The notes below the pieces were generated by a model. The model saw nothing but the letters and a program-made list of their open reading frames with translations, searched no databases and was not told the origin of the DNA. The position numbers were made by a program, and so were the translations under genes. 64,000 nt of DNA from Macrostomum lignano (Eukaryota), in NCBI GenBank assembly GCA_002269645.1, contig NIVC01001750.1, positions 62,001-126,000 on the forward strand, in the 5' to 3' direction. Position 1 is the first letter of the stretch, and each line of letters starts with the position of its first letter. Positions 1,472-34,003 of this stretch are shown piece by piece.

Positions 1472-1741
1472 CAAATTCTTACTGTAATTAGGAGCGCGTA
1501 AGTCACAATAGTGAAAAAAGACGTTACTTTTGAGGTTGCTGCAGTATCGAGTCGAACTGAAGTTTGGTAAGCGCATTTTTAATGAATCAGTTGTTTCGTG
1601 GTGTCCATGTCAACCACCGTATGAGAGTAAAAAGCGTATGAGTCGACAGTTACGAGTATAAACGCGCGCAAATCTTTCGGTCGCTAATAAAATTTATAAA
1701 CAGTCCGTGTCTCTAAAAATACAATCTTTCATTTCAGAACA

Positions 1742-2041
1742 ATGTCGCCTTCCAGTTTCAAACTGGTGTCAAGCCTGCTGTTTCTCGGCCTCCTGTGCGT
1801 GTCAGTGTCCAAAGTCACTGCGAAATGTTCCAGCAAAATCTACACAGCCGACGATTGCCCGGAGTTTTCTAACGAAGGCGCCGAATATCTGGCCTACATG
1901 TGCAAAATTTGGAGATACCGCTGCCTAAGGAGAGGGAAATATGTGCTCGATGCCAGTTGCTCCGACTGCGTCCAGAGCGCCTACACAGCCTGCGATCGGG
2001 GCCAGGCGCCGGACTCCAGCAGATTCGAATACTGCTGGTAA
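1742..2041 (+). CDS. Secreted cysteine-rich peptide, paralog 1 (99 aa, signal peptide + 8 Cys mature domain), single coding exon
   Basis: ATG-to-TAA ORF with hydrophobic N-terminus (LVSSLLFLGLLCVSVSKVTA). Clearly homologous to 4519..4824 (CSSK..DCP...GAE.LA..C..WRYRCL...CSDCVQ.AY.AC.RG.APDSSR.EYCW). Splice acceptor tttcag ends at 1737. Confidence 0.85.
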   Translation: MSPSSFKLVSSLLFLGLLCVSVSKVTAKCSSKIYTADDCPEFSNEGAEYLAYMCKIWRYRCLRRGKYVLDASCSDCVQSAYTACDRGQAPDSSRFEYCW

Positions 2042-3329
2042 ACGCGCACTTGTATTTGATGAGATCCGCGTTAAGCTTATGAAATTGTAAACTGTATTTG
2101 GACTGACGGTGTGGGTTAACAATATTAATATTTGCGTGAATTAAAACAATACCGAAGCAGTTGGTTTGAAGACAAGAAAATAGAAAATCTTTTGGAAAAA
2201 AAGAACTTTTTTGCTGAACACACATCTACGATTTATGTAGCTCGTACGTTCAATTATTTACACTAATTCATCACTTGGATATTTCCCGAAGAATGCTTAC
2301 AGATTTTTGTCATTCTTAATTATTATTACATTTTAATTAGCAAGTAATAGGACTCAATGGACTTATATTTATTTTATGTAGAAATATTCTCAGCAGAAGA
2401 CTCTTCCACTACGAGCTAAATAATTCTTCAGAGAATCATGGGAGCATACAAAAAAGAAAGATAAAAATGCAACCATAAAATGCGCTATCGCTGAGGTCCT
2501 AAACACTACAACTGAGTCACAGGACTTTTCTCAGGACAGCCAACAGGCAGTCGACGAAAAGCCGAGTGCGCGCCTGTCCTCGCCGCGGTAGGCTGCCTGC
2601 AGCTTCAGCAGCAGCACCTGCACCAGTATGACTGTCAGATGAAGACGCTTGGACGCACCAGTCTGGTGCAGTGAGAGTGCCGCGTTGGTGACTCGCTTGT
2701 CGCCGATCTTGAAGGCAACGCGCAGCAGTCCAGTGTGCGTCGCGTCATTCGGCTGATTGAGCGAATCTTTAAACATTCAAGTCTCTCTACTCGTATAGCA
2801 GCTTGGACACAAACCACCGCGTTCGCTCATGAAGCATTACTGTATTGTCATTCAAGACTCACTTTGACTGCACCAACGAATGTTTTCGGCCATGAATTTC
2901 GATTTGCTAGTGCATCCTCCCAACACCCATGGCGTAAAGCAAGATGAGTTAACGCCGTTGCTTGGTTCGGGTCGGTGGGTGATTTGACTCAGACTCGACT
3001 CTTAGCTTAAGCAACACCTGAGCATTCTGCACCGCCCTCGACGCACCACTCGAAGGTACGAGTGACGAAATGAGTTGACCAAAAAATCCTTCGTAGTTTG
3101 GTCTAAGGAGATTCAACGTCATTTTATCATGTTTAGTGATATCATGTGATATCATAATATCATATCATTTATCGTGTTTTGTGACCATGACCAGGTGACT
3201 TCAAATCATTAATAAATTTAAGCAAACGCGTTCTAATTTTATGAAAATGTACAGCGAAATAAAATACAGTTGATAGTTCATATGTTGCAACAAGGACTAC
3301 TTATGTCGTCCTTGTGTTGCAAGTTTCAG

Positions 3330-3378
3330 CCAAGGACTACTTAACAACTGTTGTTAACAGTTGTTAAGTAGTCCTTGG
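3330..3378. mobile_element. 49-bp fold-back mini-element (perfect 21-bp inverted arms) with 6-bp TTTCAG direct repeats
   Basis: ccaaggactacttaacaactg (3330-3350) and its exact reverse complement (3358-3378). tttcag at 3324-3329 and 3379-3384. Related hairpin immediately upstream (3285-3322). Confidence 0.55.
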
Positions 3379-3809
3379 TTTCAGCCTAATCCAACAAAAT
3401 TTTTACTTTTGGCAAGCAATAGTCCCGACACTTTTGCAGAATCCCTCATTAGCTGCTATCACTTCTCACACTTTTGACTGGTCCAGTCACAGTCATTTTG
3501 ACATCTCTGACATCACTGACTATCCATATACTAAAAATCAAATCTAATCATAGAGTAAAAAAACTAAGCTTCAAAACTAATCTACCGTGAGTCAAAGGCA
3601 ATTAATTCTTTTATTAAAAAAGAAACTAGAGATCGAACTTTGGAGTAATATTACATTCACTAAATAGATTATTTTCACTAAGGTTGACTCAATTATTTGG
3701 CACTCACACCTTCAGCAAGACGTAGCTCTTGTCAACAGCTGTCAGTTTTGGAACGGATGTCATTACTGATTGCTGTCATTGCTGTCATTACTGAATTGGC
3801 TCAAATTTG

Positions 3810-3821
3810 CTATTTAAAAGC
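3810..3821 (+). promoter_or_regulatory. Putative TATA box CTATTTAAAAGC of peptide paralog 2
   Basis: Same motif and similar spacing to the donor (3916) as in paralog 1. Confidence 0.5.
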
Positions 3822-3951
3822 GCAATAGCAGACTGCAAGTTTGAGTACGTGCGGTAGTGGCTTTAAGATTTAGAGTGCTCGCATCAGCGCATCAGTGCCA
3901 TCCATCCGAAGTTTGGTAAGTGCGTTGCATACATGAGCTGTGGGATGCTAC

Positions 3952-4430
3952 GTCAGGATAGACCACACCTGGATAGACCGCATCAGGATCGACCGCATCA
4001 GGATCGACCACATCAGGATAGACCACACCTGGATGGACCGCATCAGGATCGACCGCATCAGGATCGACCACATCAGGATAGACTGCATCAGAAAAAATCA
4101 CACCAGGGTAGACCGCTTCAAAATAGACACATCAGGATAGACCACATCAGGATAGAACACATCAGGATAGACCACATCAGGATAGACCACATCAGGATAG
4201 ACCACATCAGGATAGAACACATCAGGATAGACCACATCAGGATAGACCACATCAGGATAGAACACATCAGGATAGACAACATCAGAATAGAACACACCAT
4301 GCAGGATAGACCACATCAGAAAGGACCACATCAGGATAGACCACATCAGACTAAACCGCATCAGGATAGACCACATCAGACTAAACCGCATCAGGATAGA
4401 CCACATCAGGATAGACCACATCAGGATAGA
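3952..4430 (+). repeat. 15-bp minisatellite (accacatcaggatag)n inside the putative 5'-UTR intron of peptide paralog 2
   Basis: Direct reading; period 15. Confidence 0.95.
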
Positions 4431-4518
4431 AGCAGCAGACGCTTGAAAGACTATTGTCTGTGTTGTCTATGTATGTTCTGTTCCAAGTCTTTTTTGCAAA
4501 ATATTACCGTTACAGAAA

Positions 4519-4824
4519 ATGTTGGGGCTATCTAATTGCAAACTGCTGTCCAGCCTGCTAGTTCTAATTTGGTTAGTCTGCGCTTCTACCTACGTCGGCG
4601 CGAACTGCTCAAGCAAGTGCTTCTCGCGATCCGATTGTCCCGATCGGTCGGACGAAGGCGCCGAAAAGCTGGCCAAATCGTGCAGGACTTGGAGATACCG
4701 ATGCCTAATTAATGAGGGGGAGTACGTTTCGGATTCTGCGTGCTCGGATTGCGTCCAGTGCGCCTACGCAGCCTGCGGCCGGGGAACGGCTCCGGACTCG
4801 AGTAGATACGAGTACTGCTGGTAG
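4519..4824 (+). CDS. Secreted cysteine-rich peptide, paralog 2 (101 aa, signal peptide + 10 Cys)
   Basis: ORF with signal-peptide-like leader and framework C-x3-C-x5-C-x14-C-x6-C-x12-C-x2-C-x2-C-x4-C-x13-C-W. Acceptor ttacag ends at 4515. Confidence 0.87.
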   Translation: MLGLSNCKLLSSLLVLIWLVCASTYVGANCSSKCFSRSDCPDRSDEGAEKLAKSCRTWRYRCLINEGEYVSDSACSDCVQCAYAACGRGTAPDSSRYEYCW

Positions 4825-6340
4825 TCGGACGCATGGACGTTAAATATCATTATTGGAAGGCAGTTTCGATAAGATTGTACGCGCCTATGGTGTCAGTTAA
4901 TAACTTATTCATACTACATATATCGTGCAACATGCTGGCGTCCCCTGACGTCAGATTGCTGAACAGGATATTTGCTACAACACGACCATCAGAAAATAAA
5001 TCACTAAAATAGTTGGAGCAAGGATTTGAAAACAATTGATAACGGTTAGCGTTGCGATTATGTCATAAAGTACGAGCATCCGACTGTTTTTGTTGTAAAT
5101 AACTCAAGAAAGCTTGAAAAAAGTGTAGTTGGTGGCTTCCGATCTAGGCTACTGGTAGATTAATTAATTTTAAGTGAATTATTTGTAATTCTTGGCTTCA
5201 ACCGCCAGTTTTCCTGTTATCCTCCCTACTAATCCTAATATAATCGATAAAAAACGAAGACAGGAATCCCAAAAAAATTAATTTGTTCAAACAAAGACGT
5301 CACAATCAATAAAATAGTTAAAGTTTAATCGAGGCACCGTCGTGAAGTTGTACGCGAGGACTTTCGCTACCTCGGTAGTCCTCAGTTCCTTTGCATCGAG
5401 CGCTGACACCATTGGCTTCGACAGAAAGACTCTGAAGACTCTGAGTCATCTGAAGATACGCTTCTGAAGCGCTGCTACGAGTAGCTGGGCATAGCTGGGT
5501 AGCTGGGTAATTCCTGCTGGGCATACACTATCCGGAAAAGCTGTCGACCTGATATGGCGTCGCCATACAGATGCTGCTTGAACACTGTCTTGAACACGAT
5601 CGTGACGAAGAAAACGCCTGGAGCATGCAGGTCCACATGCATCAGCCTACAAAGCAGTTGCGCCACGGCCAAATCGGTACTGCAAATCAACAGTGAAACT
5701 TGATTTTATAACTTCATCACTACATCAATGAGCCCGTCAATCAAGTAAGAAAATTTCAGTAAAAATGTTTTCATGTTTTAGTTAGAGCAGCCTAATTTTT
5801 AGGTATTATCCCCTGTCCTCTTGGTGTCGCCAACAGAATTTCGCACTATTGCACACTGCTCTGCCAGGGTAGGCCAGAGTAAGTTGAAGCCAGGAATTTT
5901 TACTAAGCACGTATCAAATTAAAGCTGCCCCCATGTGCACATAAGGAGAGACACTTGAGTGATTTTTCGACTGCAGGGTGTAGCTCATGGCTCGTGCTCC
6001 AGTTTTAGCAACTGTCGAGAGCTCCCACTCTTTCTGGCTCGCGCTTTTTTGGCATTCCAGGTGCACTTGGGTTATTGAGTCGTTCTGAGAGTCTAGAATG
6101 GTTATATAGAAAATTTTGAGGGTTTAAACACCAAGTGAAAAAAGGATATAAAGTTCCCTGACAACTGGCGTTAAATTGACAGGCAGTTAGACAAATTTTG
6201 ATACAGTCAACGTACGGTTAAAACAATTCGAAACAACTCCCTGATTTGCATCAGTGTCGTAAACGGAATAGCAACTATCAAAACGTAAGTTAAAGTGAAG
6301 TCTATGGCTAGACCTACCACTATTGCAATTCATAGCTGAA

Positions 6341-6728
6341 GGCTCGAGGGATTTAATCACATACCGACCTCAAACACATAGAATATCTTATTTAAACTAC
6401 TTTAATTTAGCGGGATGTATTCAGATAAATCCCGGAGCCATACTTGTATGTCTATGGTTGAAGTTGAGGATGGGGGTGTGGGGGCGAAGCCCCTGCTGGG
6501 GGTGAGGGGACGAAGCCCCCACATTCTTACCATAGACAAAATTTCATTAAGAAATTTCTCGAGTCACGAAGGAAGAGAAGAGAGAAGCTCGTTTATTTAG
6601 ATACATACAATAATCCTTGCAATATGTCCGGGAAAGTGATCGATTAAATCCCGCAAAATAAAATCTATGTCAATAACCTCCCTGAAAGTGAGCTTTAAAG
6701 TGGTTTAAGAGATTAAATCCCGAGAGCC
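6341..6728. mobile_element. MITE with 18-bp TIRs and 3-bp flanking repeat (PIF/Harbinger-like)
   Basis: ggctcgagggatttaatc (6341-6358) vs gattaaatcccgagagcc (6711-6728), 16/18 inverted match. GAA on both flanks. Internal GGGGCGAAGCCCC hairpins similar to 24060-24140. Confidence 0.55.
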
Positions 6729-7259
6729 GAAGGCATAGAATAAACCCATAGAACATCTTATACTTATTATCTATGCATTGTAACGTATTTCCAAATCGAC
6801 AAGTGTCTATGGCCAAGACTATCGATTCAATTTACAAAGCCAGAGGGGCAGGCCATAGACATCTATGTCTTCTGGAAGTGAAAGCTTGAGTAGGTTTTTA
6901 CAAAACGGGGCTTACTTGAAGTCTATGCTCTTTCTTTGTCCAGTCGGTTTGGTTCCGAAGGGACAGCATTACGGTGCATCTGTTCTATTTTGACGCTTGG
7001 CCCATACATCTATTCGACGTGTAACAACGTCGCTGGCAAATATGTACCTTTACAATGCATTGAGCAAGTATCAAATGTCATGCGTCGAAGTTCATCCGAC
7101 GCATGACATCGTTATCCGTCGATGCAATAATGTAAAGGTACGTATTTGTCAAGGACGTTGTTAGACGTCGAATTTCTGTACGGATAAGTTGAAGTCTCCT
7201 AAGGCACGCTGCGTAGACTTGTATCTCAATTTTCAACAATCATATAATATTTCAACAGG

Positions 7260-7541
7260 ATGAAACCTACCGCCGGTCTTCTGGCTCCACTGCTAATCCT
7301 TCTCTGCTTGGCTATTGTCTGCTTCTCGTCGGCAAGCGGAAAAGTTGACTGCGACAGTGCAGAATACTCCTGCCCAAGCAGTTGCAAGTCTCTAGCCAGC
7401 ACGGCCAATATGTGCAAAAGGATAAGGAGACACTGCGGCAAATCGCCAGACTGGTGCGCTGACTGTCTGAAATGCGCCTTCTCAGCCTGTAAAGTCGGCT
7501 CTGATCCGCAGGACTACGACATCTTCACCTATTGCTACTAG
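7260..7541 (+). CDS. Secreted cysteine-rich peptide, paralog 3 (93 aa, signal peptide + 10 Cys)
   Basis: Leader MKPTAGLLAPLLILLCLAIVCFSSASG, framework C-x6-C-x3-C-x9-C-x6-C-x6-C-x2-C-x2-C-x4-C-x14-C-Y. Acceptor caacag ends at 7258. AATAAA downstream. Confidence 0.87.
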   Translation: MKPTAGLLAPLLILLCLAIVCFSSASGKVDCDSAEYSCPSSCKSLASTANMCKRIRRHCGKSPDWCADCLKCAFSACKVGSDPQDYDIFTYCY

Positions 7542-8080
7542 GAGAAGAAACTTTTAATTGAGATCAGGTGGTCAGTGGACGAGTTGAATAAACAGCTGTG
7601 GTGCTTGGGATCTCTTTTCTGATTGTTTAATTTCAAAAAGACAATTAAAACGACTTTATGCTTCGAATTATTATTCCCCGAAAAATAAAATATTTGTGAG
7701 CAAACACTGAACACGGCATGAATCAAAAAGCCAAAAAATAGATTGTTTTTTAAGTTTTTTAATTACGGTCAAATAGGCCAAGGCGACTATTGGTTTTACT
7801 CGTAGTGCGACGCATGTTTTAGTTCTTAGTACTTCTACACGTCTTGAGATGGCGGCACCCTGTGTGAATTGATGTTGATACTTTTAATTCATAAAGGATG
7901 ATACTAACTCTATCTTGATTCTGGCACAGTGGTGCACAAAATCAAAGGTGACACCTTTAGATTTCCGCAAGCATGAAAGTGTCGGTACGAGATCTTTGTC
8001 ACATTTCATTGCGGACGAATTCACAGCAATTTGTAAATTATCTACTGGCGTACGAAAAGGACTCAAATTTTAGGGGGGGG

Positions 8081-8148
8081 GGGCGTAGTCTAGCGGTCCC
8101 GGGGCGGCGCTCTGATGTGCCAGCGGTCCAGGCTCGATTCCAAGTACA
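8081..8148 (+). mobile_element. Degenerate tRNA-like sequence (possible SINE head or tRNA pseudogene)
   Basis: A-box-like gggcgtagtctagcggt and B-box-like ggctcgattcc at tRNA-like spacing; no clean cloverleaf. Confidence 0.3.
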
Positions 8149-8369
8149 AGTCACATTAATTTGGGGCCAAATTGTGGAATCTCGGCTTGGCTCTGCTTGT
8201 TCAATTAACGCTCTTGAAGGCTGACCCACAAGGCACAGGGAAGTGTATATGTAAGAATACATCAAACGAAATTTGTAGCTTGTACAGGAAACAGGCAACC
8301 TGACAGAGAAAACGTTCTTATCAGTACATAGTACATCACTTAAGGTCCAGTCATCAACAAACACTTGCT

Positions 8370-9150
8370 TTTAAAAATGGTATACATGGCACTGGCACTC
8401 GACTCGAGCACTGGCCGTGGACAGAAGTTGCCTATACATGTAAAAAAGAGACAGTACCTTTCCTGATACAATCCAATCTGGAAGATGCTCTCCATGCAGC
8501 CTTCCTCTTTCTGTATGCAATTGTTTGTTTTTACCTATTTCAAGGGCTGTATGTATAGCTCCTGCGTGCATGTGATCAAATCCAATGCTTTTTTAAACTG
8601 ATTAAATTTCCAGATGCGTTTGATATACAGTACGTATGGCAATATGTATCAAATGCAGTTTGCACCACAGATTATATTTACCTAGATGTGTCACTCCAAC
8701 ACTCGCTAGTGCATTTAGCGGCCGCTTGGCCGCAGCGAGAAAACCCAGGGGTTAGGGACACAGACAATAGCTGTATTGAATTTAATCCAAGATACGTTTG
8801 CCAACCAATGTGATTGAGCTTTTGTCTATGGTAGCAATGCATCGAGTAGCAGTTGGACCTGATGCTCTCGAGCAACTTGCATTGGCGATTGCCACCCTTT
8901 CGCAGGCAATCTCTGCCGGTAGAGTTTCAACGTGCTGATGGATGTTTTAAAACATATTTTCTTTTACATTCAGCAACCTTGCAATGTCCTTTGGGTGTTC
9001 ACCTCTGTCGAGTGCTTCGATCACAAGTGAATGGCATTGGTTTGACAGCCTATAGCATCTGGTCCACAATTCTGGGGCTGATCTTGCTCTTCCGCAACAG
9101 TTGCAAATGGGCCACAAAAAGCTATACCCGTTTGCACCACGTCATATTCG
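8370..9150 (-). mobile_element. Possible decayed transposase fragments
   Basis: Broken minus-strand frames include an HTH-like segment (SLVIEALDRGEHPKDIARLLNV) and Cys/His-rich pieces; many stops. Family not assignable. Confidence 0.25.
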
Positions 9151-10004
9151 TGATCAGATTTTTTTGTATAAATTTATTTATCTCAATTACTACCTTAGTT
9201 CTATATAAAAGTACTGACCCTCTATTGACGCCTGTTTGAGCAGAGATTGTGTGACATTTGTATGTCAAGTGAACTTTAGAAGTGCTGCTTGCTGCATGAT
9301 TGCCAGAAGTTTCGTATGACACCATGCAAAAAAGTATTGAATTTCGTTCACAGCTCAAATTTCGGATAGAAGTTTTTGTTAACCACTACAGTTGCAGCGG
9401 ACACGCGAAAGTATTGAATTTCAAAATGTCAAAGTTTTAAATTTCCAATTTAAATCCGTAGAAACTTTTTAAAACCTAACCATTTTGATCCATCCAAAAT
9501 CTTCAGATTTTGAATTAGCTGAGAGCTAAAAAATTGAGCAAAATTCAATCTACGATTTTCAAGAGGCTCGTTCGATCTACTTTTCAAAGTCAAACACTTT
9601 GAGCTAATTCTAGCTATTTCTCCAAAACTTGTGTTTTCGAGCGTAGTTGTGACGAAAGAATTTTTTTGTATAAAATCCTTCTACAAAGACCTCAAAAATA
9701 ATAATTGTGGGTTTATATTTGCAGTGTAACTTTAAAAAATAGATCGGAGCCAACAGCCAATCAAGGTAAGAAAACCTATTAATTTTTAATAAAAATATTC
9801 GGATACTCGACCTCTCTCACTGACCATGCATGGGCAACAGACGTAGAAGTATTCCTTCTTTTTCTGTTTTTATCAAGCACTACTATATAATAACTTGAGT
9901 TGGCAATTAATATTGCATTGGGATGACATGCCAATGCTTTGTCCCGCCACCCCATCTTGTGAGTCGTGGTAATCAATTTTCTTCAGAGCGCCAAAATATA
10001 GCGC

Positions 10005-10266
10005 TTTCGGCGCCAAAATGTGTGCCTGCGGCGCCAAAATGAGTGCCTGCGGCGCTAAAATGAGTGCCTGCGGCGCTAAAATGGGTGCCTGTGGCGCTAA
10101 AATGAGTGCCTGTGGCGCTAAAATGAGTGCCTGTGGCGCTAAAATGAGTGCCTGCGGCGCCAAAATGAGTGCCTGCGGCGCCAAAGCAGTGCCAAAATTT
10201 AGTCATGTACATGTTGAATTCTTGGCTTTGTCCCCCCCCACCATAAAATCCACGGCGACGCCCTTG
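10005..10266 (-). mobile_element. Non-autonomous element remnant: ~9 copies of the 21-bp unit (aaaatgagtgcctgcggcgct) plus terminal CAAGGGCGTCGCC
   Basis: Segment 10205-10266 matches 42833-42893. Terminus resembles the TIR of the MITE at 28133. Confidence 0.6.
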
Positions 10267-10761
10267 TGTACAGGGCATGATGCTTTTTTCGAAAAGATAA
10301 CGGAAATTACTGATAGTTAAATACAATACAGCGACGGTGTGGGGAAATTTCTTTTGTTCACATGTCCTTATGCGTAGTGTATTTTTCATAGATGTATTTC
10401 CCTAGCACGATTTGTACTGCATACTGTGTTTTCTAGTGGGGTACTTACTAAGATTCTCGTTGTCAATTCGTCAATTTTAGCTAGCTAAAAAAAGTTACGC
10501 AAACATCATAAATTCGTTCAGAGAAAGCACCTTGAGTAACCATCTCCATCTCAACTTCGGACAAAACTTCACAGGTAAATTATTTTCTTATTTTTCAGTG
10601 CTAAAAATCTGTACACTTTAAATATATTGACAAATGTATTTACATGTGGCAACTAAAAGTCTAAAACCCAACTGCATCAGGTGAAGTTCGCACAATTTTC
10701 AATTTTGTTTATATCCACAATATTTAACAGAAAATTTCCGCTGAATTTCCACAGTTCATTC

Positions 10762-11034
10762 ATGCCTGCTACGCTGCAACCGCTGCTCCTGATGAGCATC
10801 TTTCTGTTCACAATCGGCGCGTCACTCAATAATATAGACTGCAACAGCCCTAAAGTGACCTGCCCGAGATCGTGCAGCAGTTCACTGGACAGCCTGATCT
10901 CCGGCTGCAGGTTCAGCGCCTACGTTTGCAGAGAATCGCTGGACTGGTGCGCCAACTGTTTGAGCTGCGCGTTCAACGCTTGCGGCAGAGGAGCGCCGCA
11001 GGATTATGAAATATTTTCCTATTGCTACTACTAA
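10762..11034 (+). CDS. Secreted cysteine-rich peptide, paralog 4 (90 aa; likely true start MPATLQ at 10762, not 10681)
   Basis: ATG at 10762 follows acceptor ccacag (10754). Signal-like leader, framework C-x6-C-x3-C-x10-C-x6-C-x6-C-x2-C-x2-C-x4-C-x13-C-YY. Shares DWCA.CL.CAF.AC..G..PQDY.IF.YC with paralog 3. AATAAA near 11145. Confidence 0.87.
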   Translation: MPATLQPLLLMSIFLFTIGASLNNIDCNSPKVTCPRSCSSSLDSLISGCRFSAYVCRESLDWCANCLSCAFNACGRGAPQDYEIFSYCYY

Positions 11035-12306
11035 TAATAGCAACTGCAAATTGTGCTGAAGGGGGTGAATGGAGAAAGGTTAATTAAACAAAAAATGTTA
11101 TAAAGATCACGATTTCTTATAAATTGAAACAATTTTACACTTCCAATAAAAACCTATATATATATAATTGATGGATACTTTATTGAGATATACACTCGTA
11201 ATGATCTCTAATCTCTAATTTTTGTATTCTCACTGAAAGGAAACAGAATTTGGAAAAAAAGCTTACATTAAGTAGCCGCGGTGACTATTGATTGTACTTG
11301 ATAATGGAAGGAACATAGAAGAATATCACACCTTGATATCTAGGACTTTTGTATCATTTCCTACTAGTCATCTGGCCTTTTCTTGAAAAATACCGAAAAC
11401 AATTCTCTCCTACTTATATAAGGTGAGTTGAATCGAATACGCGCACTTAAAACGACGAATTAGAAGCTAAAACAGATTAATAAAAAAGTAGGAAAAAATC
11501 CGCTCGTATTATTGGCACAGTTGTTGTTGTACTCAGTGCATACGTGAAGCCACAAACGTATATGAGAGACAAAATAGGCTGTGAGATTTTATAAACAGCT
11601 AGACTGTTACATACATAAACCTCAATTCACAGGAGTCATTTTTTATAAAGAAAGAATTTACAGATTGGTAAGGCAACTTTCAATTAATAACAGTCAAACA
11701 TAAATGTAAAATAAAAAATAGTTTTGTAAAAATTTTCTACACGGTTTCATCTTGGCGTTGAGATAAAAAACACTACCTAAAAACACATGAGATAAAAAAT
11801 AGCTATCATCTTCCATCTTCCATCTTCAAAACTTGTCCATCTTCAAAACCATAGACACAATCTACCATTGTTTAGCAATTTGACGATCATTTTTCGCATT
11901 TTTTATGCAGAACAATACATTACTACAAACAATGCATTGTTTTTAGGATCGTCAAACAGAAAAACAATGCAAAGAATCAGCGGTCGCAGCACGTGACAAC
12001 GATTTGTCTATGGCTCGCTTGCTTATTTTGCAGCCTAGAACCACAGAATGGCTTGAACAGCGGGCAGTGAAATTCGGCAACAGAAACGCCTCGTCGCTCG
12101 CGGACATTTTACGAGTAGCTTGCAGAAGCCTTCCAAGGATAATGAATATGGGTACATGATAATTTTTTAACAATATGTAAACACGGAACGTAACGATCAG
12201 CTCGTTAAAAGTTCAGTTTGATGCAACGTTTGCTTTAATTAGCACCGTTCGCATTTTCCACCGTTGCATATTAGGAGTTTGTATAAGTGAAGAAAAAGTG
12301 CAAAAT

Positions 12307-13815
12307 TTAGCTTCGATTGAAAGGACGCAGAGTTAGACAATTTGGCAACAGTTGATGCCTGCAGAACAACTGTAGGCTGAGCAAATTATACAGCAGTGTG
12401 GCAAAAGTCTGACTGGACAAGAACGCAACTAACTCATCGTTGAAAATCGAATTGTAGACGTTAGTTGCGTCTCGCGAGATCAAGCAGAGTTTGATGCGGC
12501 TACCGTGATGGTCGATATTGTTGGCATTATTACACACGCGAAACTGAACGAACAGCCGGCTGGCGTCAACTGGATTCAGGCTGGCACCCGCGGATAGACA
12601 TTGAATTACTTTGTCCACTTGTTCATTAAGGACAACGCTTGAATCGTTGAGCTGTTCAGCAGTCAACGGACCATTGTCGTAACCAAGGCAAAATTCTTGT
12701 AGATCATGCACAGTGGCCAACAATTCTTCGGGCAGACTCGGAGCCTGCACCCGTGCACCGGTCGACATTGACAAAGATAGTTGCGATCCGGTGTCCGTGC
12801 AGTCATCAACAGGAATCGACACGCAATCCAATGACGGTGCGCGTTCAGAACCGCCAAGCTCTATTAGTCGATTGACAATCGTTTGGATGTCGGGCCTATC
12901 AGCTGGGTTGTGATTGACAGCTTGTGCCTGAAGCTCCCTCAGTCTAATCGCAGTTTCTGTCTGCGATTGTGTCGGCCATTCGGCTTGTAGAATACTATTT
13001 TCCCAATTTATTTGCGAATCAAGCAGTGGAGGCAGATCTCTTAATAGTACGAGCTAGTTCCAAAATCACCCTACCGAATGAGTAACAGTCGGCCGGTTTG
13101 CCGTACTCGGCAAGCGGTTTTCCACGCTGCTGGCTGGTAGAAATTTCTACGCGTACGACGACTTTCACTTCGGGCGCCTGCCACAGCTCCGTGCCCTGCT
13201 CGGCAGTCATATTGATTTGACAATCGCGACCGATCTCCAAGTCGCAGAGTTTGAGAGTAGCCCCGCGATCATACAGCAGCATATTTAGAGCCTTCACGTC
13301 GCGATGAACGATTTGCCGAGAGTGCAAAAACTCCAGACCCCTTGCCGCCTGCAACAGCCAACAGGTCACGTGATCAAGTGTGTAGCTAATAACAGTCGGA
13401 AACACATCGGCCCGGCTGATGGCGTATCTCAGACTAAAGTCGGCCAGCTCCATGTAGAACCGAGGAAGGTGCCGATCGGCAAGTGCACACTGTCTGGCTG
13501 CGATATTTCTAAACTGCGAGCAATCACCGACACCAAGTTGGAGTGCCGATTTTCGAGTAAGATATTGTATTCATTTCTGGCTCTCTCGTTGTACTTGGCA
13601 ATTCTATCGACATTCATTTCGTTCTGATTGCCGAATACTTTTCTAACAATGTACTGGCCAAAGCGCTGTCTAGCTTCGCTATTCTCATCAAGTTTAACAC
13701 GTTCGACTTTGTTTATGCTGGAGCCGCATGAACGACCGACAGTGAAACTGGAGATAACAAAACGACTCAGCTTCTCTTCATCATTGTTTTCGACACCTGG
13801 ATTATCCTGATCCAT
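12307..13815 (-). pseudogene. Intronless TAK1/MAP3K7-like protein kinase with two compensating frameshifts (pseudogene or assembly indels); ~502 aa if repaired
   Basis: N-lobe (GRSCGSSINKV, IVRK, RNEYNIL..RHSNLVSV) in frame from ATG 13815. C-lobe (FYMELAD, WLLQAARGLEFLH, HRDVKALN, LKLCDLE, GTELWQAPEV, DCYSFG) in a second frame. Subdomain XI (HNPADRPDIQTIVNRL) returns to the first frame and runs to the stop at 12307. Span 1509 nt = 503 codons. Confidence 0.75.
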
Positions 13816-14485
13816 TGCTGTCAGAAAGCGCAAAATCAAGACAAATTGATATCAATTCAAAAAGAAATTTTGAAATATTTCTGTTTCATAAGCGCCAAGA
13901 AACGCCCTAGACCAGGCTCAATTCTATTTTTCCATGATAAATTTTCGGTCATAGTTCGCCCCCCTACGAACTAACTAACTAACTAAACTAAGCGTTGAGA
14001 AACATGTAAGTGAAATAAAAGCATACAATTCACCTCTCTCAATTAAAGCAAATAGTAAATTTTTTGAAGTCGTAAATTTTGTTTGAAATTTTTCCAAAGT
14101 TCAAATCAATACACATGGGAGGAGGGACACAAGAGTCACTCTTCGTAGAATTGAAGGGGATTATTGATCAAACATTCACGTGGACTGGCCAATCAAAATA
14201 TTTGCTCATATATTATAAGTTGCATGAAAGACGGAATTTATAGAATCAAATTTTAAATTAGGAAACAAACAATGATAATCATAATTAAGTAGTTAATTAT
14301 ATGCGCATCAAAGTTCCTTGATACTTTTTTCATTTTTCCACCACCGCTGGATTTTTAATGAAAATAGGCCCTGGACAAAAAATGGAGAACATTATTAGAA
14401 AAGCCCCACTGCGTGAAATCAAGAAAATAGTACAATGTGTACTTTGGTTTGACTTCTAATCAAACTAAGACAGACAGAGACACTA

Positions 14486-14486
<1 letters not shown>

Positions 14487-14564
<78 letters not shown>
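14487..14564 (+). repeat. (GACA)n microsatellite just downstream of the ACOX stop
   Basis: Direct reading. Confidence 0.95.
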
Positions 14565-14633
14565 TCCCGACAATCAAGCAGTGACTCAGCAATCATCAGT
14601 CCTGAGTCGGTCCGAGCCCACAGGCGGCAGAAG

Positions 14634-17600
14634 TCACAGCTTAGCCAGGCTCCTGCCAGCCAGGAACTGTCTAGTGTAGAGCTCGTAGGACTCGTGCACA
14701 TCAGTGGCATTGAGCGGCGACTGGCGGGCCCACTGCAGCATGGCCTCGTACACCTGGCCGTCGTAGCGGCCGATCACAGAGCACAGCATGCGATCTGGCA
14801 GGTCGAAGGCCTCCACCAAGGCCACGGCGTTAGGCCGAAGCTCCGTCAGAAGCGAGTCGATGGCGTCCTGGCAGCGGGCCAGATCGCTGCGACTCAACTG
14901 GACGTCGCCGGCGCCGGAGACGACTTCGTTGAGCAGGAACAGCCGGCACAGGGAGGTGAGGACACCGCAAATTTTTGGATTCTCGGCCGCCTTAGCTGAG
15001 TCTAGGAAGGCCTGACCAACGTACAGGATGCAGTGAGCCTCTGCGCACCTGCGGAAATGGGGATGATGCTAATGTTGCAAATGAGCCATCCAGATGGTCA
15101 TTTAATAACCACTCATCACGGCCAGCTCATCGCACCATCTGTCACTCCTGAAGTCACTTCGCCCGTCACTTTGACTATCAAGCGAGTCAAATTTGAGATT
15201 ACCAACAAAATAACGAGTGTTTGAGCTCTAAAAGAATATATTCTAAACATTTGGAGTCGGACAAGACCAACAAAATCTGCTGCTTTTGTGTCGCAAAAGT
15301 GCGAGAGACTACAGAACCTTGTCAGCACTTTGGCGCAAGCTCTAGCTCTTTTTAACGGTTTTGATACAAGTCCCGTTTAAAGCGTCATCAACGCACGGCC
15401 AAATCTGCTTTTGGAATGAATCTTGACGATGTTTGTCACTAACAGCATTCTCAGGCTTCCAGTGTCGTACCTGAAGGCAAAGAAGATAGGGGATGGGTAT
15501 CACTACCGAGCAGTTGCGGATGGGCCGTGGATTTCGTCTGTTCATCGATCGCAGCTTCATCGAGAGTCGCTGTCAGTGCACCCACAGGACTGAACGCAAG
15601 TCATGCATATTTTCGGAGCAACGAGAAGCTTAAAAGTCTCTGGCAGCGGAGGTGTGAAAACGAAGTTTTGGTAACCTTTGGTGACGGATTTGCCTGAAGT
15701 TCGTGTGAGAAAGTAGCAATTGGAGGACTTAGAAAGTTAAAAACCAAAAACGATGGCTGTTTGGCGAAACCGAAGGATAGAAATCTGATAAGTAAGTTTG
15801 AACTCCGAACCTCATCATCTCGGACTGGCTGCACGGGCAGTGAAGTCGGCAAGAGTTAGAAACCGCCCTGCATCGTGCGCTAGGAAGAGTAATACAGTGT
15901 AGACTTTCTCTAACTTGGTAGGAGTCGTTACTAATAGGCTTTGATTCGCTAGGCTACAGAACTGCTACAGAAGCGGAGAGTGACGTAAGACTGACACGGT
16001 AGCGCCTCACGGACGGAGAGAGACGAAGACGTTGCCTGACTACTAAGCAATCGGTAATGTTGAATTGAATGTGTTTTTGCTTTATCAAGCAACAGCGACA
16101 TAATCCGGTATTGGCAGCGGGTTTTATTACCCGAGTTTTTAGTGACCTTTTGTAGCGAGTTTTTGACCTTGGATGTCTACCGAGTACGCACATAACCGAG
16201 CATTGATTTGAACAGAAAAGCGCCCCTTATCTGTGCTTGGTCCGGAGTGATTTATTAATAAGACTTTTATGAAAAATCGAAGAATATCTCCTGACTCGCT
16301 AGTGAGCCTTTTTATAAGCGATTTTATCATTATTTTTCAACCAGGATTATTCCGTAACCGTGCCCTTGATCTCCCATCCCTCACCTAGTCAGCCGCCGGG
16401 ACACGGCCTGGAAGGCGTCCGCCCAAGCCTGTCGCTGTTCAATGAAGGAGTTGAACCGGCCGCTGACTTCCAGCAGCATGCTGAGCGATCGCCAGCGCAG
16501 CCAACAGAGCAGCAGGTCGGCGGTAAGCGGGCCGCCAGCGAGTTTGGGCTGCGGTGTCGGCCTCGAGCGGATGTAGGCGTCGCTAGGGGCCAGCTGTTCG
16601 CCACGACGAGCCCGTTCAACGCATTTAAGCAGATGCCGGCCGGTCTGCAGCAGCATGACGGTGTTCTCGCCTTCGTAGGTGCAGGCCGGATTGATATCAT
16701 TGTAGATTTTTGGCAGGCCGCTGGCCTCGCTAAAACCGAAGCCGCCGCAGCAGCGACGGCATTCTTCCACGCAGGCAGCGCCGCGGTTGCTGCCCACGGC
16801 TTTGAGACCAGCCGAGAGGGCGTGCGTCTCCGGCAGGCGCTCGGTCCGGCCTGCGGGTGAAATTTTCTTACATGTAATTACTGGAGTGGGATTTGTGTAT
16901 GCGGGTGTGTCTGCGGCAAACCTGTGATCGGACTGATTGGTCCAGCAACATTGGATCTGGGAGTCAGTGGTACAGCAACTTTGGATCTGGGAGTCAGTGG
17001 CACAGCAACAGAGGATCTGGGAGTCAGTGGCACAGCAACAGAGGATCTGGGAGTCAGTGGCACAGCAACAGAGGATCTGGGAGTCAGTGGCACAGCAACA
17101 GAGGATCTGAGAGTCAGTGGTCCAGCAACAGAGGATCTGGGAGTCAGTGGCACAGCAACAGAGGATCTGAGAGTCAGTGGTCCAGCAACAGAGGATCTGG
17201 GAGTCAGTGGTACAGCAACTTTGGATCTGGGAGTCAGTAGCACAGCAACAGAGGATCTGGGAGTCAGTGGCACAGCAACAGAGGATCTGGGAGTCAGTGG
17301 CACAGCAACAGAGGATCTGAGAGTCAGTGGCACAGCAACAGAGGATCTGGGAGTCAGTGGCACAGCAACAGAGGATCTGGGAGTCAGTGGCACAGCAACA
17401 GAGGATCTGGGAGTCAGTGGCACAGCAACAGAGGATCTGGGAGTCAGTGGCACAGCAACAGAGGATCTGGGAGTCAGTGGCACAGCAACAGAGGATCTGA
17501 GAGTCAGTGGTACAGCAACTTTGGATCTGGAGTCAGTCGCCCAGCAACAGAGGATCTGGGAGTCAGTGGCACAGCAACAGAGGATCTGGGAGTCAGTGGC

Positions 17601-20600
17601 CCAGCAACAGAGGATCTGGGAGTCAGTGGCACAGCAACAGAGGATCTGGGAGTCAGTGGCACAGCAACAGAGGATCTGGGAGTCAGTGGCACAGCAACAG
17701 AGGATCTGGGAGTCAGTGGCACAGCAACAGAGGATCTGAGAGTCAGTGGTACAGCAACTTTGGATCTGGAGTCAGTCGCCCAGCAACAGAGGATCTGGGA
17801 GTCAGTGGCACAGCAACAGAGGATCTGGGAGTCAGTGGCCCAGCAACAGAGGATCTGGGAGTCAGTGGCACAGCAACAGAGGATCTGGGAGTCAGTGGCA
17901 CAGCAACAGAGGATCTGGGAGTCAGTGGCACAGCAACAGAGGATCTGGGAGTCAGTGGCACAGCAACAGAGGATCTGGGAGTCAGTGGCACAGCAACAGA
18001 GGATCTGAGAGTCAGTGGTACAGCAACTTTGGATCTGGAGTCAGTCGCCCAGCAACAGAGGATCTGGGAGTCAGTGGCACAGCAACAGAGGATCTGGGAG
18101 TCAGTGGCCCAGCAACAGAGGATCTGGGAGTCAGTGGCACAGCAACAGAGGATCTGGGAGTCAGTGGCACAGCAATAGAGGATCTGGGAGTCAGTGGCAC
18201 AGCAATAGAGGAACTGGGAGTCAGTGGCCCAGCAATAGAGGAACCGGGAGTCAGTGGCCCAGCAATAGAGGATCTGGGAGTCAGTGGCCCAGCAATAGAG
18301 GATCTGGGAGTCAGTGGCCCAGCAATAGAGGATCTGGGAGTCAGTGGCCCAGCAATAGAGGATCTGGGAGTCAGTGGCCAAGCAACAGAGGATCTGAGTG
18401 GCTGGCCCAGCAACTGACACTCTGGGAGGCTGGCCCAGCAACTGAGGATCTGGGGGGCTGGCCCAGCAATAGAGGATCTGGGAGTCAGTGGCCCAGCAAT
18501 AGAGGATCTGGGAGTCAGTGGCCCAGCAACAGAGGATCTGAGAGGCTGGCCCAGCAACTGACACTGTGAGAGGCTAGCCCAGCAACTGACACTCTGAGAG
18601 GCTAGCCCAGCAACTGAGGATCTGGGGGGCTGGCCCAGCAACTGAGGATCTGGGAGGCTGGCCCAGCAACTGAGGATCTGGTAGGGGATCTTGTCAGGTC
18701 ACCATCCTTCATCATCATCATACTGACCCTCCAGAACATCGGGCTGCACGGTGAAGTACAAATCCCTGAGCACTTCGCTAGCAAACCATAGTCCGTAGCA
18801 ATTGGCCACGCAAGTGAGCAGTCGGTACTGGTGCACCGGATAGTCCAGCAGCCGCGGCTCCGGAGCCCCCGGACTCGACGGTTCGCCCTGCCTTCGAACG
18901 CAAGCGTATCGCACGGCGATCGTGGCGGCCTCCGAGATGCCTCTAGCGGCGTCGCTAACAATCAGCGAACGAACAAAGACCATAGTGCCGTAGGTGAGTT
19001 TCTCGTTGCTAACCCGCCTGACATAGGTACCGTCGGGTTGAACTTCGGCATTTCGCATCAGCATATTCTCGCGAGGGATTCTGACGCTGTTTAGCTGCAG
19101 GAATCCGTTGTCGATGGTGTGGTAGCCCATCTTGGGCCCGATGTCCCCGCAGACAACGCCTGGAAGGCTGCGATGAGTGGACTCGTCGCGCAGTTGAACA
19201 AGGAACATGTGGACACCGTGGCACCGGCCCTGGGTGTGCAGCTGGGCCACCACAACGGCGTAGTTGCAGGTCTTGCCAACTGCAATTTAGTAGAGGAATA
19301 CGAGTTATAATTAATCTTTATATTTCCCACTCTACCCTACATATTTCCCACTCTACCCTACATCTCTCACACTTAAACCTACATCTCTCCCATTCTACCC
19401 TACATCTCTCCCACTCTACCCTACATCTCTTCCACTCTACCCTACACTCTACCACTCTATCCTAAATCTCTACCACGCTACTCTACATCTCTCCCACTCT
19501 ACCCTACATCTCTCCCACTCTACCCTACATTTCTCCCACTCTACCCTACATCTCTACCACTCTACCCTACATCTCTACCACGCTACTCTACATCTCTCCC
19601 ACTCTACCCTACATCTCTCCCACTCTACCCTACATCTCTCCCACTCTACCCTACATCTCTCCCACTCTACCCTACATCTCTCCCACTCTACTCTACATCT
19701 CTCCCACTCTACCCTACATCTCTCCCACTCTATCCTACATCTCTCCCACTTTACCTTTCATCTCTCCCACTCTACCCTACATCTTTCCCACTCTACTCTA
19801 CATCTCTCCCACTCTACCCTACTCTCCCACTCTAGATACATATCTATCCCCCCTCTCTACCCTACAGTCTCACTCTACCCTACATCTCCACACTCTATCC
19901 TGCATCCTCACTTTCCACCTTTGATCCCCACTCTACCCAGTACCCTACATCCCTACTCTCCACTTTACATCTCTCCTCTCTACCCTAGATTTCTCCCACT
20001 CTAGCCTAAATCTCCCCTCTCTACCTTACATCTTCCGTCTCTATCCTACATCTTCCCTCTCTACCCTATTATCTCTTCCACTCTACCCTACGCCTCCCGT
20101 CACCTACCCTGCATATCTCTCCTCTCCCTGCATCTCAATCTCTTATCCACTAGTCTATCTCCAACCCCAACCCCATATAGCGAAGCCGCTTACGTCCTCC
20201 AGGCCACCACTTGATAGACGTAGTGGTGGGCGAATGCAACACGAACTGCTGCGAGCTCGGATCGTACGTGGCGGTAGTCTCGATGCCGCGCAGAAAAGTG
20301 CCATGGCCCATTTCGGTCTGCGCGTAGGTGCCAATAATCTCATAGTTGAGAGCTCGTTGGAGCCATCGCTCGCGCTGCTCGTCGCTGCACTGGCCCATCA
20401 GAGTGGGCACAAACATGACCCAGTGCAGCCCGATTGGCGACACTTCGCGGGGCATAGCAATTCTGCCAATTGTTAGATACTACCGATATGTAGCGTAAGA
20501 AACTTTATTAAGACACAAAAATTGGGTAATTAATTTTTAAGCCTATAGGCAAATATTTTTTCGCCTAATTATTGGCTACAAACATTTCGAGATGCATTTA

Positions 20601-22880: not shown

Positions 22881-23022
22881 TTTAGTTATAATAATAGTTG
22901 ATTTAAATCCCAAAAAGACTTTTCCATCATCTCTGACGACTTCAGTATCCTTTTGTTGCCAAGGGATGACAAAAATTAAAAAAAGATATAATGCATCTAA
23001 AAGGGCTCTATCTACCCGCCAA

Positions 23023-33101: not shown

Positions 33102-34003
33102 CTCGCATGTGGGTAATTGAGATTGTAAAACTCTTCTAACTAATGAACAGGTGCTGACAATTGCTGTCGGATTTGAGTACAACGTGAAATAACAAGGACT
33201 GCTGGTCGTTAGAGAGGGTACGCCGCTTGTACGCTCATCATGCTTGCGATGTTTCGTACGTAGAAACTTCGAATACATGTATAATGCGCCGTAATTACTA
33301 TATTTTTGATGAAGATATTTTAAAACAATCGCAGGTAACACCATAGCCGGTAGAGTCACTGCATGTCCCGCAAAAATCATGTTGTGTTGAAACTGTCCGT
33401 CCTTGAAAATTTCTGATGGCAAAGTCCATCCCTTCAGAGCTTGTCGAGCAAAACGTTTTCTCGCGTTTTGAGTTCATACTCGAAAATTTCCCAGAGCTGA
33501 GTTACGTGTGGCTGGCTTCCAAAAAAGTTTAAAGTTTCTTCCATATAAAATTTTTCTATTTGTGCAGTACTATTAAATGTATCAGAAAAACTGTTATTTA
33601 TGATATATTTAATTCCCAAACCGTTCCGGAAATTTTAATTCCGCTGATTGAAGTTGATTAAAATATATACTGGTATTTATATTTCAAATTTAAACAACGC
33701 ACACACTCGCCTTGTTTGCTTACAATTTGTTTAAATGCACTTAAAGACAGATACGCTATTTTCGTCCCTATTCTGTGTAAATCTTGTGTCGGACTAAAAC
33801 TAAAATAACCATCATTGATTTTGATGATACTAAATCTTCATACTTCGAAGTAATTCAAATCACACGCAAGCCACTTGATTCCCTAGATCGCATGAAATTA
33901 ATTCGTCAATGTACTCTTATATTACTCGTAAGTTGTATTGCATTGTACTCGTAATACATTTTAAATGCAAATTTAGGGCACTGTCCTTCCAACGCATGCA
34001 CTG

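Follow-up and report, generated by a model that had tools for sequence, protein, structure and literature searches.

A lineage-restricted family of predicted secreted disulfide-rich helical proteins, partly in tandem, in Macrostomum lignano

It is probable, at roughly three in four, that the open reading frames (ORFs) described here represent a genuine family of disulfide-rich helical proteins that are secreted, under constraint and restricted to one lineage, the products of six paralogs in the free-living flatworm Macrostomum lignano, all of them functional protein-coding genes. The window, that is, the whole stretch of DNA that was analysed, covers 64,000 nucleotides of contig NIVC01001750.1, from base 62001 to base 126000. 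The four intact same-strand ORFs that a first-pass annotation had placed at 1742, 4519, 7260 and 10762 all lie exactly there, but the family that it had counted as four genes has six, the additional ones being p5 and the off-window p0 (Table 1). The genes p0 and p1 to p4 form a head-to-tail array of five, and p5 is inverted and separate, lying on the strand opposite to p1-p4 at a distance of 27 kb from p4. The five-gene array is also intact on two further contigs of the M. lignano assembly, which is partly duplicated. The p1 protein is identical on three contigs, the counterpart of p3 on another contig is PAA84745.1 (BOX15_Mlig003226g3), and near-identical copies of p5 are PAA87752.1 and PAA84741.1 (BOX15_Mlig033514g2 and g3). 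The mechanical ORF of p4 opens at a GTG (10681), and its coding sequence was counted from the first ATG. For p0, p1, p3, p4 and p5 there are GenBank gene models, and p2 has none in the annotation of NIVC01001750.1. Given that the GenBank annotation of M. lignano was built from a genome-guided RNA-seq transcriptome (PMC5730564), the five modelled genes are transcript-based.

Table 1. Coordinates of the family members and of the signal matches around them, in window positions.
Feature	Position	Strand	Remarks
p0, sixth paralog	277-576 nt upstream of window start		
p1 CDS, 99 aa	1742-2041	+	Predicted signal peptide 1742-1822 (cleaved between VTA and K); 72-aa mature domain; 8 Cys
p2 CDS, 101 aa	4519-4824	+	Predicted 28-aa signal peptide (cleaved between VGA and N); 73-aa mature domain; 10 Cys
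p3 CDS, 93 aa	7260-7541	+	Predicted 27-aa signal peptide (cleaved between ASG and K); 66-aa mature domain; 10 Cys
p4 CDS, 90 aa from first ATG	10762-11034	+	Predicted signal peptide ~20-21 aa; mature domain ~69 aa; 10 Cys; C-terminal YCYY
p5 CDS, 92 aa	37854-38132	-	67-aa mature domain; 10 Cys; beyond interval 1742-11034
Acceptor-like CAG of p1 (TTTCAG)	1735-1737	+	4 nt upstream of ATG
Acceptor-like CAG of p2 (TTACAG)	4513-4515	+	
Acceptor-like CAG of p3	7256-7258	+	
Acceptor-like CAG of p4	10752-10754	+	
Acceptor-like CAG of p5	38143-38141	-	
ATTAAA poly(A)-signal match, p1	2140-2145	+	99 nt past stop; consensus match only
AATAAA match after p2	4995-5000	+	Consensus match only
AATAAA match after p3	7587-7592	+	Consensus match only
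AATAAA match after p4	11145-11150	+	Consensus match only
AATAAA match after p5	37714-37709	-	Consensus match only

Judged from their sequences, the ORFs are mutually homologous, well past chance: tblastn within the window pairs p1 with p2 at an E-value of 1e-32 (58% identity), p3 with p4 at 2e-18 and p3 with p5 at 4e-8. As had been proposed, each of the first four ORFs carries a signal-peptide-like N-terminus and a Cys-rich mature domain. The latter measures 66-73 aa and contains 8-10 Cys, ranges that hold for all six paralogs. The number of Cys is even throughout (10, 8, 10, 10, 10 and 10, with p1 as the one that has 8), eight Cys columns are invariant, and the motif C-x2-C-x2-C-x4-C-x13/14-C, with W, Y or YY after its last Cys, is present as described. 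The fixed scaffold consists of these eight Cys, a C2-Pro, an Ala-Cys/Gly loop and a C-terminal Tyr-Cys; the non-Cys identity between subfamilies is just 17-29%, which bears out the earlier view that the Cys scaffold is kept and the residues between the Cys diverge. Cys occupancy is complementary at columns 36 (CICEKG), 46 (SSSCCC) and 83 (CSCCCC). In p1, the Ser reported in place of the third Cys of the motif (C8) was found, but two Cys are gone, with Ile standing at Cx too. The putative N-terminal partner of C8 sits at the CPxxC position in p3-p5 and at the SKC position in p0 and p2, and p1 lacks both members of this pair. This co-loss and the helix geometry, rather than coordinates, were used for disulfide pairing, from which we infer one disulfide between C8, which falls in the predicted helix 2, and the N-terminal Cys (Cx/C3).

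At the level of sequence, constraint on the family is demonstrated. All 15 copies (five genes at three duplicated loci) are intact, no Cys is altered among the three locus copies, and the variable sites among them are 14 synonymous to 14 nonsynonymous, where the neutral expectation is 78% nonsynonymous (binomial P = 0.0012). Between paralogs, dS goes from 0.8 to saturated and the dN/dS of the mature domain is 0.25-0.47. The paralog duplications are old, and any suggestion of fast divergence in the first-pass annotation is not upheld.

An exhaustive HMM search with the family profile against 1.84e9 (1.84 billion) representative proteins returned four clusters with M. lignano members only, in agreement with the claim of a lineage-specific family. 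The sources name M. lignano for the three clusters that were not masked as window-encoded; the remaining one, p4, is on record solely from NIVC01001750.1. The description of the family as uncharacterised likewise stands: hmmscan of ten family proteins against Pfam (E <= 10) yields no family, the known gene IDs were not found in the paper texts searched or in supplements of M. lignano transcriptome papers, and GenBank names the members hypothetical proteins.

Signal peptides and cleavage sites were called heuristically, from the Kyte-Doolittle core and the -3/-1 residues. All six paralogs have an N-terminal hydrophobic core (10-residue Kyte-Doolittle mean of 2.6-3.65), an n-region charge of 0 to +1 and small-residue -3/-1 sites at residues 20-28, and none has a second hydrophobic segment on this scale. 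The single core, the small residues and the even Cys count agree in 6/6 paralogs with the proposal that these proteins are secreted; the N-termini are signal-peptide-like, and secretion is predicted from them. The mature peptides have a net charge of -1.3 to +0.7 and a pI of 4.9-7.6 in all six. The cationic/aromatic patches that had been pointed out, KIWRYRCLRRGK in p1 and KRIRRH in p3, are indeed present, but they are local only, in mature proteins of this net charge, and are not conserved between paralogs.

The description of single-exon genes holds for the coding sequence, but in every copy an acceptor-like CAG stands 1-8 nt before the ATG. Such a CAG precedes only 9.2% of the ATGs in the window, and those of the family are kept in all three locus copies. 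The trans-splice acceptor motif of M. lignano is [T/C]TNCAG (PMC8629364), and the CAGs may be either the acceptor of a 5'UTR intron or a spliced-leader trans-splice site. If they are spliced-leader sites, the terminal ATG of the leader is out of frame for p1, p3, p4 and p5, which is awkward. The poly(A)-signal matches are consistent with separate short mRNAs.

The AlphaFold2 (AF2) models, built on five sequences only, confidently predict the same helix layout in both subfamilies, a three-helix mini-protein with helices of 14-22 residues. The model of the p2 mature domain has a pLDDT of 92.6 and a pTM of 0.82, and that of p3 a pLDDT of 82.7. Foldseek comparison of these two models with the PDB gave nothing below E = 1, which weakly suggests that the fold may be undescribed, a small three-helix bundle being a generic fold. 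In the predicted structure, paralogs differ strongly on the exposed sides of helix 1 and in the loop between helices 1 and 2.

In the reading that we prefer, each gene would give a short mRNA with the start codon directly behind a splice acceptor, and the product would enter the secretory pathway by means of a cleaved N-terminal signal peptide. Oxidative folding would then lead to a mini-protein of 7-8 kDa with a short N-terminal segment and three helices, in which five disulfides (four in p1) pin the fold. Given the differences between paralogs in helix 1 and in the loop that follows it, the proteins would act extracellularly by binding a partner through this variable surface, and the neutral to acidic character of the mature proteins argues against a membrane-lytic cationic peptide. 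As a prior and not as a result, a plausible role, at clearly less than even odds, is that of an effector in mucus or defence that gland or epidermis secretes. A bolder version, in which the five-disulfide three-helix fold is undescribed and found in macrostomids only and the paralogs are diversified ligands of distinct receptors or channels (pheromones, mating-partner manipulators or channel modulators), is rather doubtful; if true, it would provide a new scaffold for bioactive peptides, and this in an animal that lends itself to genetics.

Among known ligands, some are helical, disulfide-rich and of comparable size, such as the CHH/ITP hormones, Aplysia attractin and the Euplotes pheromones. 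Their existence, together with the compact helical fold predicted by AF2, the neutral to acidic charge and the long-term purifying selection on old paralogs, is compatible with extracellular signalling ligands, either neurosecretory/endocrine hormones or water-borne pheromones, each with its receptor. This is nonetheless unlikely, given that no sequence or Foldseek similarity to such ligands was found in the PDB, and that none of the six paralogs has amidation sites or conserved dibasic processing sites.

UniRef names the proteins of the p0, p3 and p5 types 'ShKT domain-containing protein', a UniProt label that presumably comes from an automatic PROSITE-profile rule. Taken at face value, it would make them highly derived members of the ShKT class that carry additional disulfides, are extended at the C-terminus and act as K+ ion-channel ligands (cf. 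the sea-anemone toxins ShK/BgK, the MMP23 toxin domain and nematode SXC). A six-Cys subset can be threaded by eye onto the ShKT order, with the proposed Cx-C8 pair of p0 and p2 as C1-C6 of ShKT, and the GKY of p1 aligns with the Lys-Tyr dyad of the toxins in a 2.2-bit alignment. However, this threading fails for p3-p5, and the label was not reproduced by Pfam, HMMER, hhalign or Foldseek, in line with the absence of a ShK match noted in the first-pass annotation. PF01549 gives no match at E <= 10 in ten proteins, and a purpose-built ShKT HMM scores at most 2.2 bits on all six paralogs with filters off, while as a control the same profile recovers 18 ShKT-type PDB chains, including BgK, ShK, MMP23, BmK1, aurelin and AcK1. 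The hhalign probability is 0.7%, and ShKT is not among the Foldseek matches of the two AF2 models in the PDB at E <= 10, a comparison that is weak for tiny proteins and here starts from predicted structures. The terminal CxxxCxxC is absent from 6/6 paralogs (regex), with CxxCxxC/S instead, and the size, Cys number and long helices of the family depart from the 35-40 aa and 6 Cys of ShKT. A ShKT origin is, on balance, improbable.

Seminal fluid typically contains small secreted proteins that are lineage-specific and belong to tandem families. The prostate-limited (Mlig-pro) transcripts of M. lignano are reportedly mostly small and unannotated. There are 76 of them, and SignalP finds a signal peptide in 38 of 65 translated products (PMC5977470), so that signal peptides are common in this class. 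That the proteins come from prostate gland cells, are passed at mating and influence the partner is nevertheless quite improbable: the supplements of PMC5977470 contain nothing that matches the family in sequence and no Mlig-pro link was made, the dN/dS of 0.25-0.47 and the old duplications give no hint of the fast evolution that such genes commonly show, and the prior is low, since only tens of the tens of thousands of genes are prostate-limited.

Antimicrobial activity is frequent among Cys-rich secreted peptides, and the local patches of p1 and p3 would suit such a role, but classical cationic antimicrobial or membrane-lytic peptides are very improbable in view of the net charge and pI of all six mature proteins, the variation of the patches between paralogs, and the lack of defensin, macin or saposin matches in Pfam, PDB sequences and Foldseek. 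Finally, spurious ORFs of 50-140 aa are plentiful in the repeat-rich window and profile searching of the PDB turned up weak matches to Gal4/LAC9 over C-x6-C-x6-C-x2-C (E = 0.056-0.08), but chance ORFs or decaying, functionless pseudogenes are effectively refuted by the constraint analysis (with mutual homology, intact copies, synonymous excess, invariant Cys and transcript-based gene models against them), and intracellular Gal4-like Zn2Cys6 modules are scarcely credible with an N-terminal signal peptide, which cannot be reconciled with DNA binding in the nucleus, and with E-values that fall short of significance and stem from the Cys spacing.

Compared with known systems, the family resembles the ShKT/SXC domain (PF01549, PS51670) in being small, secreted, Cys-rich and partly helical, and differs from it in the long predicted helices, the missing terminal CxxxCxxC and the 8-10 rather than six Cys. 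With the crustacean/insect CHH-ITP-MIH hormones, Aplysia attractin and the Euplotes pheromones, which act by receptor binding, it would share a size of 40-75 aa, an all-helical structure, several disulfides and secretion, by analogy only; the Cys frameworks differ and the M. lignano proteins lack processing and amidation signals, and homology is not suggested. Mlig-pro1-76 (PMC5977470) belong to the same species and form a class rich in SignalP signal peptides, but identity with none of them is established and the evolutionary rate of the family is not elevated. Between 35 and 44.5% of M. lignano genes are without homologues in human, Schmidtea and Schistosoma (PMC5816591), and this family falls in that fraction of Macrostomum-specific orphan genes; given so large a lineage-specific share, it is moderately interesting. 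It stands apart from most of these orphan genes as a multi-copy family whose Cys scaffold is strictly conserved and whose fold is predicted with confidence.

The genes p1 to p4 are homologous far above chance level. When the four proteins were compared with the whole window by tblastn, p1 and p2 matched each other with E=1e-32 and 58% identity, and p3 and p4 with E=2e-18; no further relatives beyond p1-p5 were found in the window by this search. A sixth paralog, p0 (PAA64442.1, BOX15_Mlig022385g1), is placed head-to-tail with p1 and directly upstream of it, outside the window, and is itself preceded by a tandem repeat. The locus is composed of a five-gene head-to-tail array, p0-p4, with a spacing of 2.3-3.5 kb, and of p5, which is inverted and sits 27 kb downstream, with a kinase, an acyl-CoA oxidase and other genes between it and the array. 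The first-pass annotation had described a cluster of four same-strand genes, and for p1-p4 this is confirmed, with coordinates in exact agreement with a mechanical ORF list, but the family has six genes when p0 upstream and p5 on the minus strand are included. The motif that it had read in these proteins, C-x2-C-x2-C-x4-C-x13/14-C with a trailing W, Y or YY, is present in the ORFs, as is the Ser in place of the third Cys of this motif in p1. The cationic patches that it had pointed out, KIWRYRCLRRGK and KRIRRH, are also there, but they are local and paralog-specific.

Coordinates of the family genes, repeats and neighbouring genes (positions are those of the window unless a contig or locus is named; L002 is a stretch that includes the contig upstream of the window, and L004 and L005 are loci with their own coordinates)
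Feature	Position	Strand	Product	Source	Acceptor-like hexamer	CAG-to-ATG span
p0	NIVC01001750.1:61425-61724 = L002:10001-10300; 277-576 nt before window position 1		99 aa, 10 Cys		TTTCAG	3 nt before ATG
p1	1742-2041		99 aa	mechanical ORF list	TTTCAG	1735-1744
p2	4519-4824		101 aa	mechanical ORF list	TTACAG	4513-4521
p3	7260-7541		93 aa	mechanical ORF list	CAACAG	7256-7262
p4	10762-11034		90 aa counted from first ATG	mechanical ORF list	CCACAG	10752-10764
p5	37854-38132	minus	92 aa	tblastn, E=4e-8 to p3	TCGCAG	38143-38130
15-nt minisatellite upstream of p2	3953-4430
Further minisatellites (others also present)	16943-18681, 19325-20136, 29107-32465, 33999-37409, 40254-42810, 47370-48423, 49332-50655
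21-nt repeat AAATGAGTGCCTGCGGCGCTA	10008-10185 and 40254-42810
Protein-kinase gene	~12307-13839; L004:15586-16725; L005:15760-16194	minus (window)
Conserved neighbours	~14000-19300, ~23000-25650, ~45000-53200	minus

All paralogs begin with a signal-peptide-like N-terminus, in which the hydrophobic core has a Kyte-Doolittle mean of 2.6-3.65 over 10 residues, and the candidate cleavage sites have small residues at -3 and -1 (VSA/D, VTA/K, VGA/N, ASG/K, GAS/L and VDG/Y), both by heuristic criteria. The mature domains have 66-73 aa and 7.1-8.3 kDa and are neutral to acidic (pI 4.9-7.6, net charge -1.3 to +0.7); conserved dibasic sites are lacking, and the sole N-glycosylation site is the NCS at the N-terminus of p2. 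The six paralogs share, without variation, eight Cys columns, the Pro that follows C2, an Ala-Cys pair, a Gly and the Tyr-Cys at the C-terminus; between subfamilies, 17-29% of the non-Cys positions are identical. The occupancy of three more Cys columns is complementary across the paralogs. C3, the Cys in CPxxC, is found in p3, p4 and p5; p0 and p2 carry in its place Cx, a Cys located four residues after C1; and p1, which has neither of them, is the sole copy without C8. From this complementary occupancy we infer a disulfide between C8 and C3 or Cx; most copies would then have five disulfides, and p1 would have four. The N-terminal partner of C8 would have been shifted between subfamilies and the entire bond lost in p1, making this a clean example of one family in which a disulfide changes position and then disappears.

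The window covers bases 62001-126000 of contig NIVC01001750.1 (GCA_002269645.1), as given by the offsets of p5 and other genes that an exact look-up located there. This contig belongs to Mlig_3_7 (NIVC00000000), an assembly made from the DV1 line, and that assembly is partly duplicated (PMC5730564). The p0-p4 array is also present, with its order unchanged, on NIVC01000363.1 and NIVC01000218.1, and the 15 array gene copies on the three contigs are all intact. The variable sites across the three array copies are 14 synonymous and 14 nonsynonymous, while the nonsynonymous share expected under neutrality is 78% (binomial P=0.0012); half of the nonsynonymous sites (7/14) fall in the signal peptides and none changes a Cys. 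Among p0, p1 and p2, dS lies at 0.8-1.1, and it is saturated in the other paralog pairs; the dN/dS of the mature domains between paralogs is 0.25-0.47, indicating that the duplications are old and that each copy has been under purifying selection. Positive selection was not found in a whole-gene test, with dN/dS below 1 wherever measurable; between subfamilies, dS is saturated.

The annotation in GenBank derives from a genome-guided RNA-seq transcriptome (PMC5730564), and the gene models that it holds for p0, p1, p3, p4 and p5 are indirect evidence of transcripts. The lack of a model for p2 is possibly due to the 15-nt minisatellite directly upstream of this gene, because repeat-overlapping transcripts were filtered out of the annotation. 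A word-indexed protein search with p2 returned p2 alone, and an exact-sequence contig look-up with the same query gave no match because p2 is not a called gene.

No paralog has an interrupted coding sequence. In every copy a CAG preceded by a T-rich stretch ends 1-8 nt 5' of the ATG; these acceptor-like CAGs are conserved across all locus copies, and a comparable CAG is found before just 9.2% of the ATGs in the window. In M. lignano, a spliced leader of 35 nt with an ATG at its end is added to about 30% of the genes at the acceptor [T/C]TNCAG (PMC8629364), a motif matched by the sites of p0-p2. If splicing occurred at the CAGs, the leader ATG would share the frame of the ORF in p0 and p2, where it would add two residues, and would be out of frame for p1, p3, p4 and p5, where it would open an overlapping upstream ORF. 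The CAGs could be used in trans-splicing or could be the acceptors of an intron in the 5'UTR. An AATAAA or ATTAAA is found 46-205 nt 3' of every stop. An operon is not claimed, given that the intergenic distances in the array (2.3-3.2 kb, repeats included) exceed the 1 kb limit by which M. lignano operons have been defined, where repeats are subtracted (PMC8629364), and that a separate poly(A) signal follows each gene. The simplest interpretation is that each gene gives a short mRNA of its own.

Long minisatellite arrays, with units of 15-37 nt and up to 180 copies, extend over a large part of the window, where they give rise to many long spurious ORFs and fill the introns of several neighbouring conserved genes. 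The window is consistent with the simple and tandem repeat content of 15% reported for the M. lignano genome. The 21-nt repeat is located 5' of two family genes, at a distance of about 0.6 kb from p4 and about 2.1 kb from the inverted p5, and could be either the trace of a rearrangement that parted p5 from the array or a dispersed repeat family. The product called for the protein-kinase gene that adjoins p4 has 144 aa on the window's contig and 379 aa on NIVC01000218.1, and the gene is uncalled on NIVC01000363.1; the duplicated loci may have decayed to different degrees or may have been mis-annotated. Among the other neighbours are an acyl-CoA oxidase, whose called product of 665 aa contains Pfam ACOX domains, and a gene of 1029 aa in which zinc-finger and trunk sequences resembling Sec24 were recognised by eye; there are also ORFs in which leucine-rich-repeat and ubiquitin-like stretches, also seen by eye, suggest a tubulin-cofactor-E-like gene.

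Full HMMER, run over 1.84 billion representative proteins with a profile built from five mature domains, retrieved only four clusters, corresponding to p5, p4, a p3 variant and p0. Both p1 and p2, with an identity of about 57% to p0, are presumably represented by the p0 cluster. All of the clusters are from M. lignano, in line with the lineage-specific family proposed from the sequence at first. Pfam gave no meaningful match, only noise from Dicty_CAD (E=0.054) and Nodulin_late (E=0.015), of which the Nodulin_late match extends over the signal peptide. A Gal4/LAC9 zinc cluster, obtained at E=0.056 or worse in a sequence profile search of the PDB, was rejected because it is a sub-significant match to Cys spacing (a C-x6-C-x6-C-x2-C coincidence) in a secreted protein.

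The mature domain of p2 was modelled by AlphaFold2, from an alignment of the five window sequences only, with a pLDDT of 92.6 and a pTM of 0.82, and that of p3 with a pLDDT of 82.7. The two models have a common layout, in which a short N-terminal turn is followed by three helices; helix 1 carries C4 and C5 at a spacing of seven residues, helix 2 carries the CxxCxxCxxxxC block, and the final Cys is at the end of helix 3. Foldseek searches of the PDB with both models gave nothing below E=1 (best E 1.1 and 2.3, TM <0.5), and the top matches are unrelated helical fragments. This is weak evidence for a new fold, since small helical bundles are generic and the power of Foldseek is low at such size.

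UniRef gives the name 'ShKT domain-containing protein' to A0A267GFA8, A0A267GR48, A0A267GFD3, A0A267EUM9 and A0A267GNZ8, attaching it to p0-, p3- and p5-type proteins, which would place the family with the ShK toxin-like domains; the label was presumably triggered by the PROSITE profile. Against it, Pfam ShK has no match in 10 family proteins at E<=10. A ShKT profile of our own, made from seven toxin and MMP23 sequences, is considered valid because it recovers BgK, ShK, MMP23, BmK1, aurelin and AcK1 from the PDB, and it scores at most 2.2 bits on the six paralogs with filters off. The probability given by hhalign for ShKT versus the family is 0.7%, the terminal CxxxCxxC is absent from all six paralogs, and no ShKT structure appears in the Foldseek PDB lists of either model. 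Membership of ShKT is rejected on the evidence of Pfam, HMMER, hhalign, the motif and Foldseek, and a very remote relationship is improbable. The inability of the first-pass annotation to match ShK is borne out by Pfam, HMMER, hhalign and Foldseek, and the label, being irreproducible with these four, is probably the result of a profile that accepts the Cys pattern too readily, which illustrates that an automatic database label can prove unsupported under independent tests.

On the basis of their anatomy, we commit to the reading that these are secreted, disulfide-locked helical mini-proteins that would act extracellularly, and they may bind partners through a variable surface formed by helix 1 and the loop. 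The likelihoods of the different roles are priors from charge, constraint and species biology and not results. A gland or epidermal secretion, for mucus or defence, is placed at about 0.35. A signalling ligand or pheromone is a more doubtful candidate, and a ShKT-like channel ligand is unlikely. A seminal-fluid protein is slightly less likely still; none of the family peptide motifs occurs in the supplements of a prostate in situ screen (PMC5977470). A classical cationic antimicrobial is rated very low because of the charge data. The identifiers Mlig003226, Mlig033514, Mlig022385 and Mlig009623, which do not cover p1 and p4, are absent from the searchable literature and, as a weak negative, from the supplements of PMC5816591, PMC7336406, PMC8662610, PMC5946080 and PMC12896417.

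Proteins of this family are already in GenBank as hypothetical proteins, and by the tests run the family is undescribed and in no curated family. An orphan secreted family is not surprising, given that over a third of M. lignano genes (35-44.5%) are lineage-specific (PMC5816591). What lifts it above routine is a confident fold prediction with no structural match, together with a tidy pattern of disulfide migration in a tractable species. RNAi, in situ hybridisation and transgenesis are established in M. lignano, and therefore the function of the family is directly testable. It is a new family inside a well-known class, that of lineage-restricted secreted Cys-rich mini-proteins, and should the predicted fold be confirmed together with a specific target outside the cell, it would represent a new disulfide-rich helical scaffold among the secreted mini-proteins of animals.
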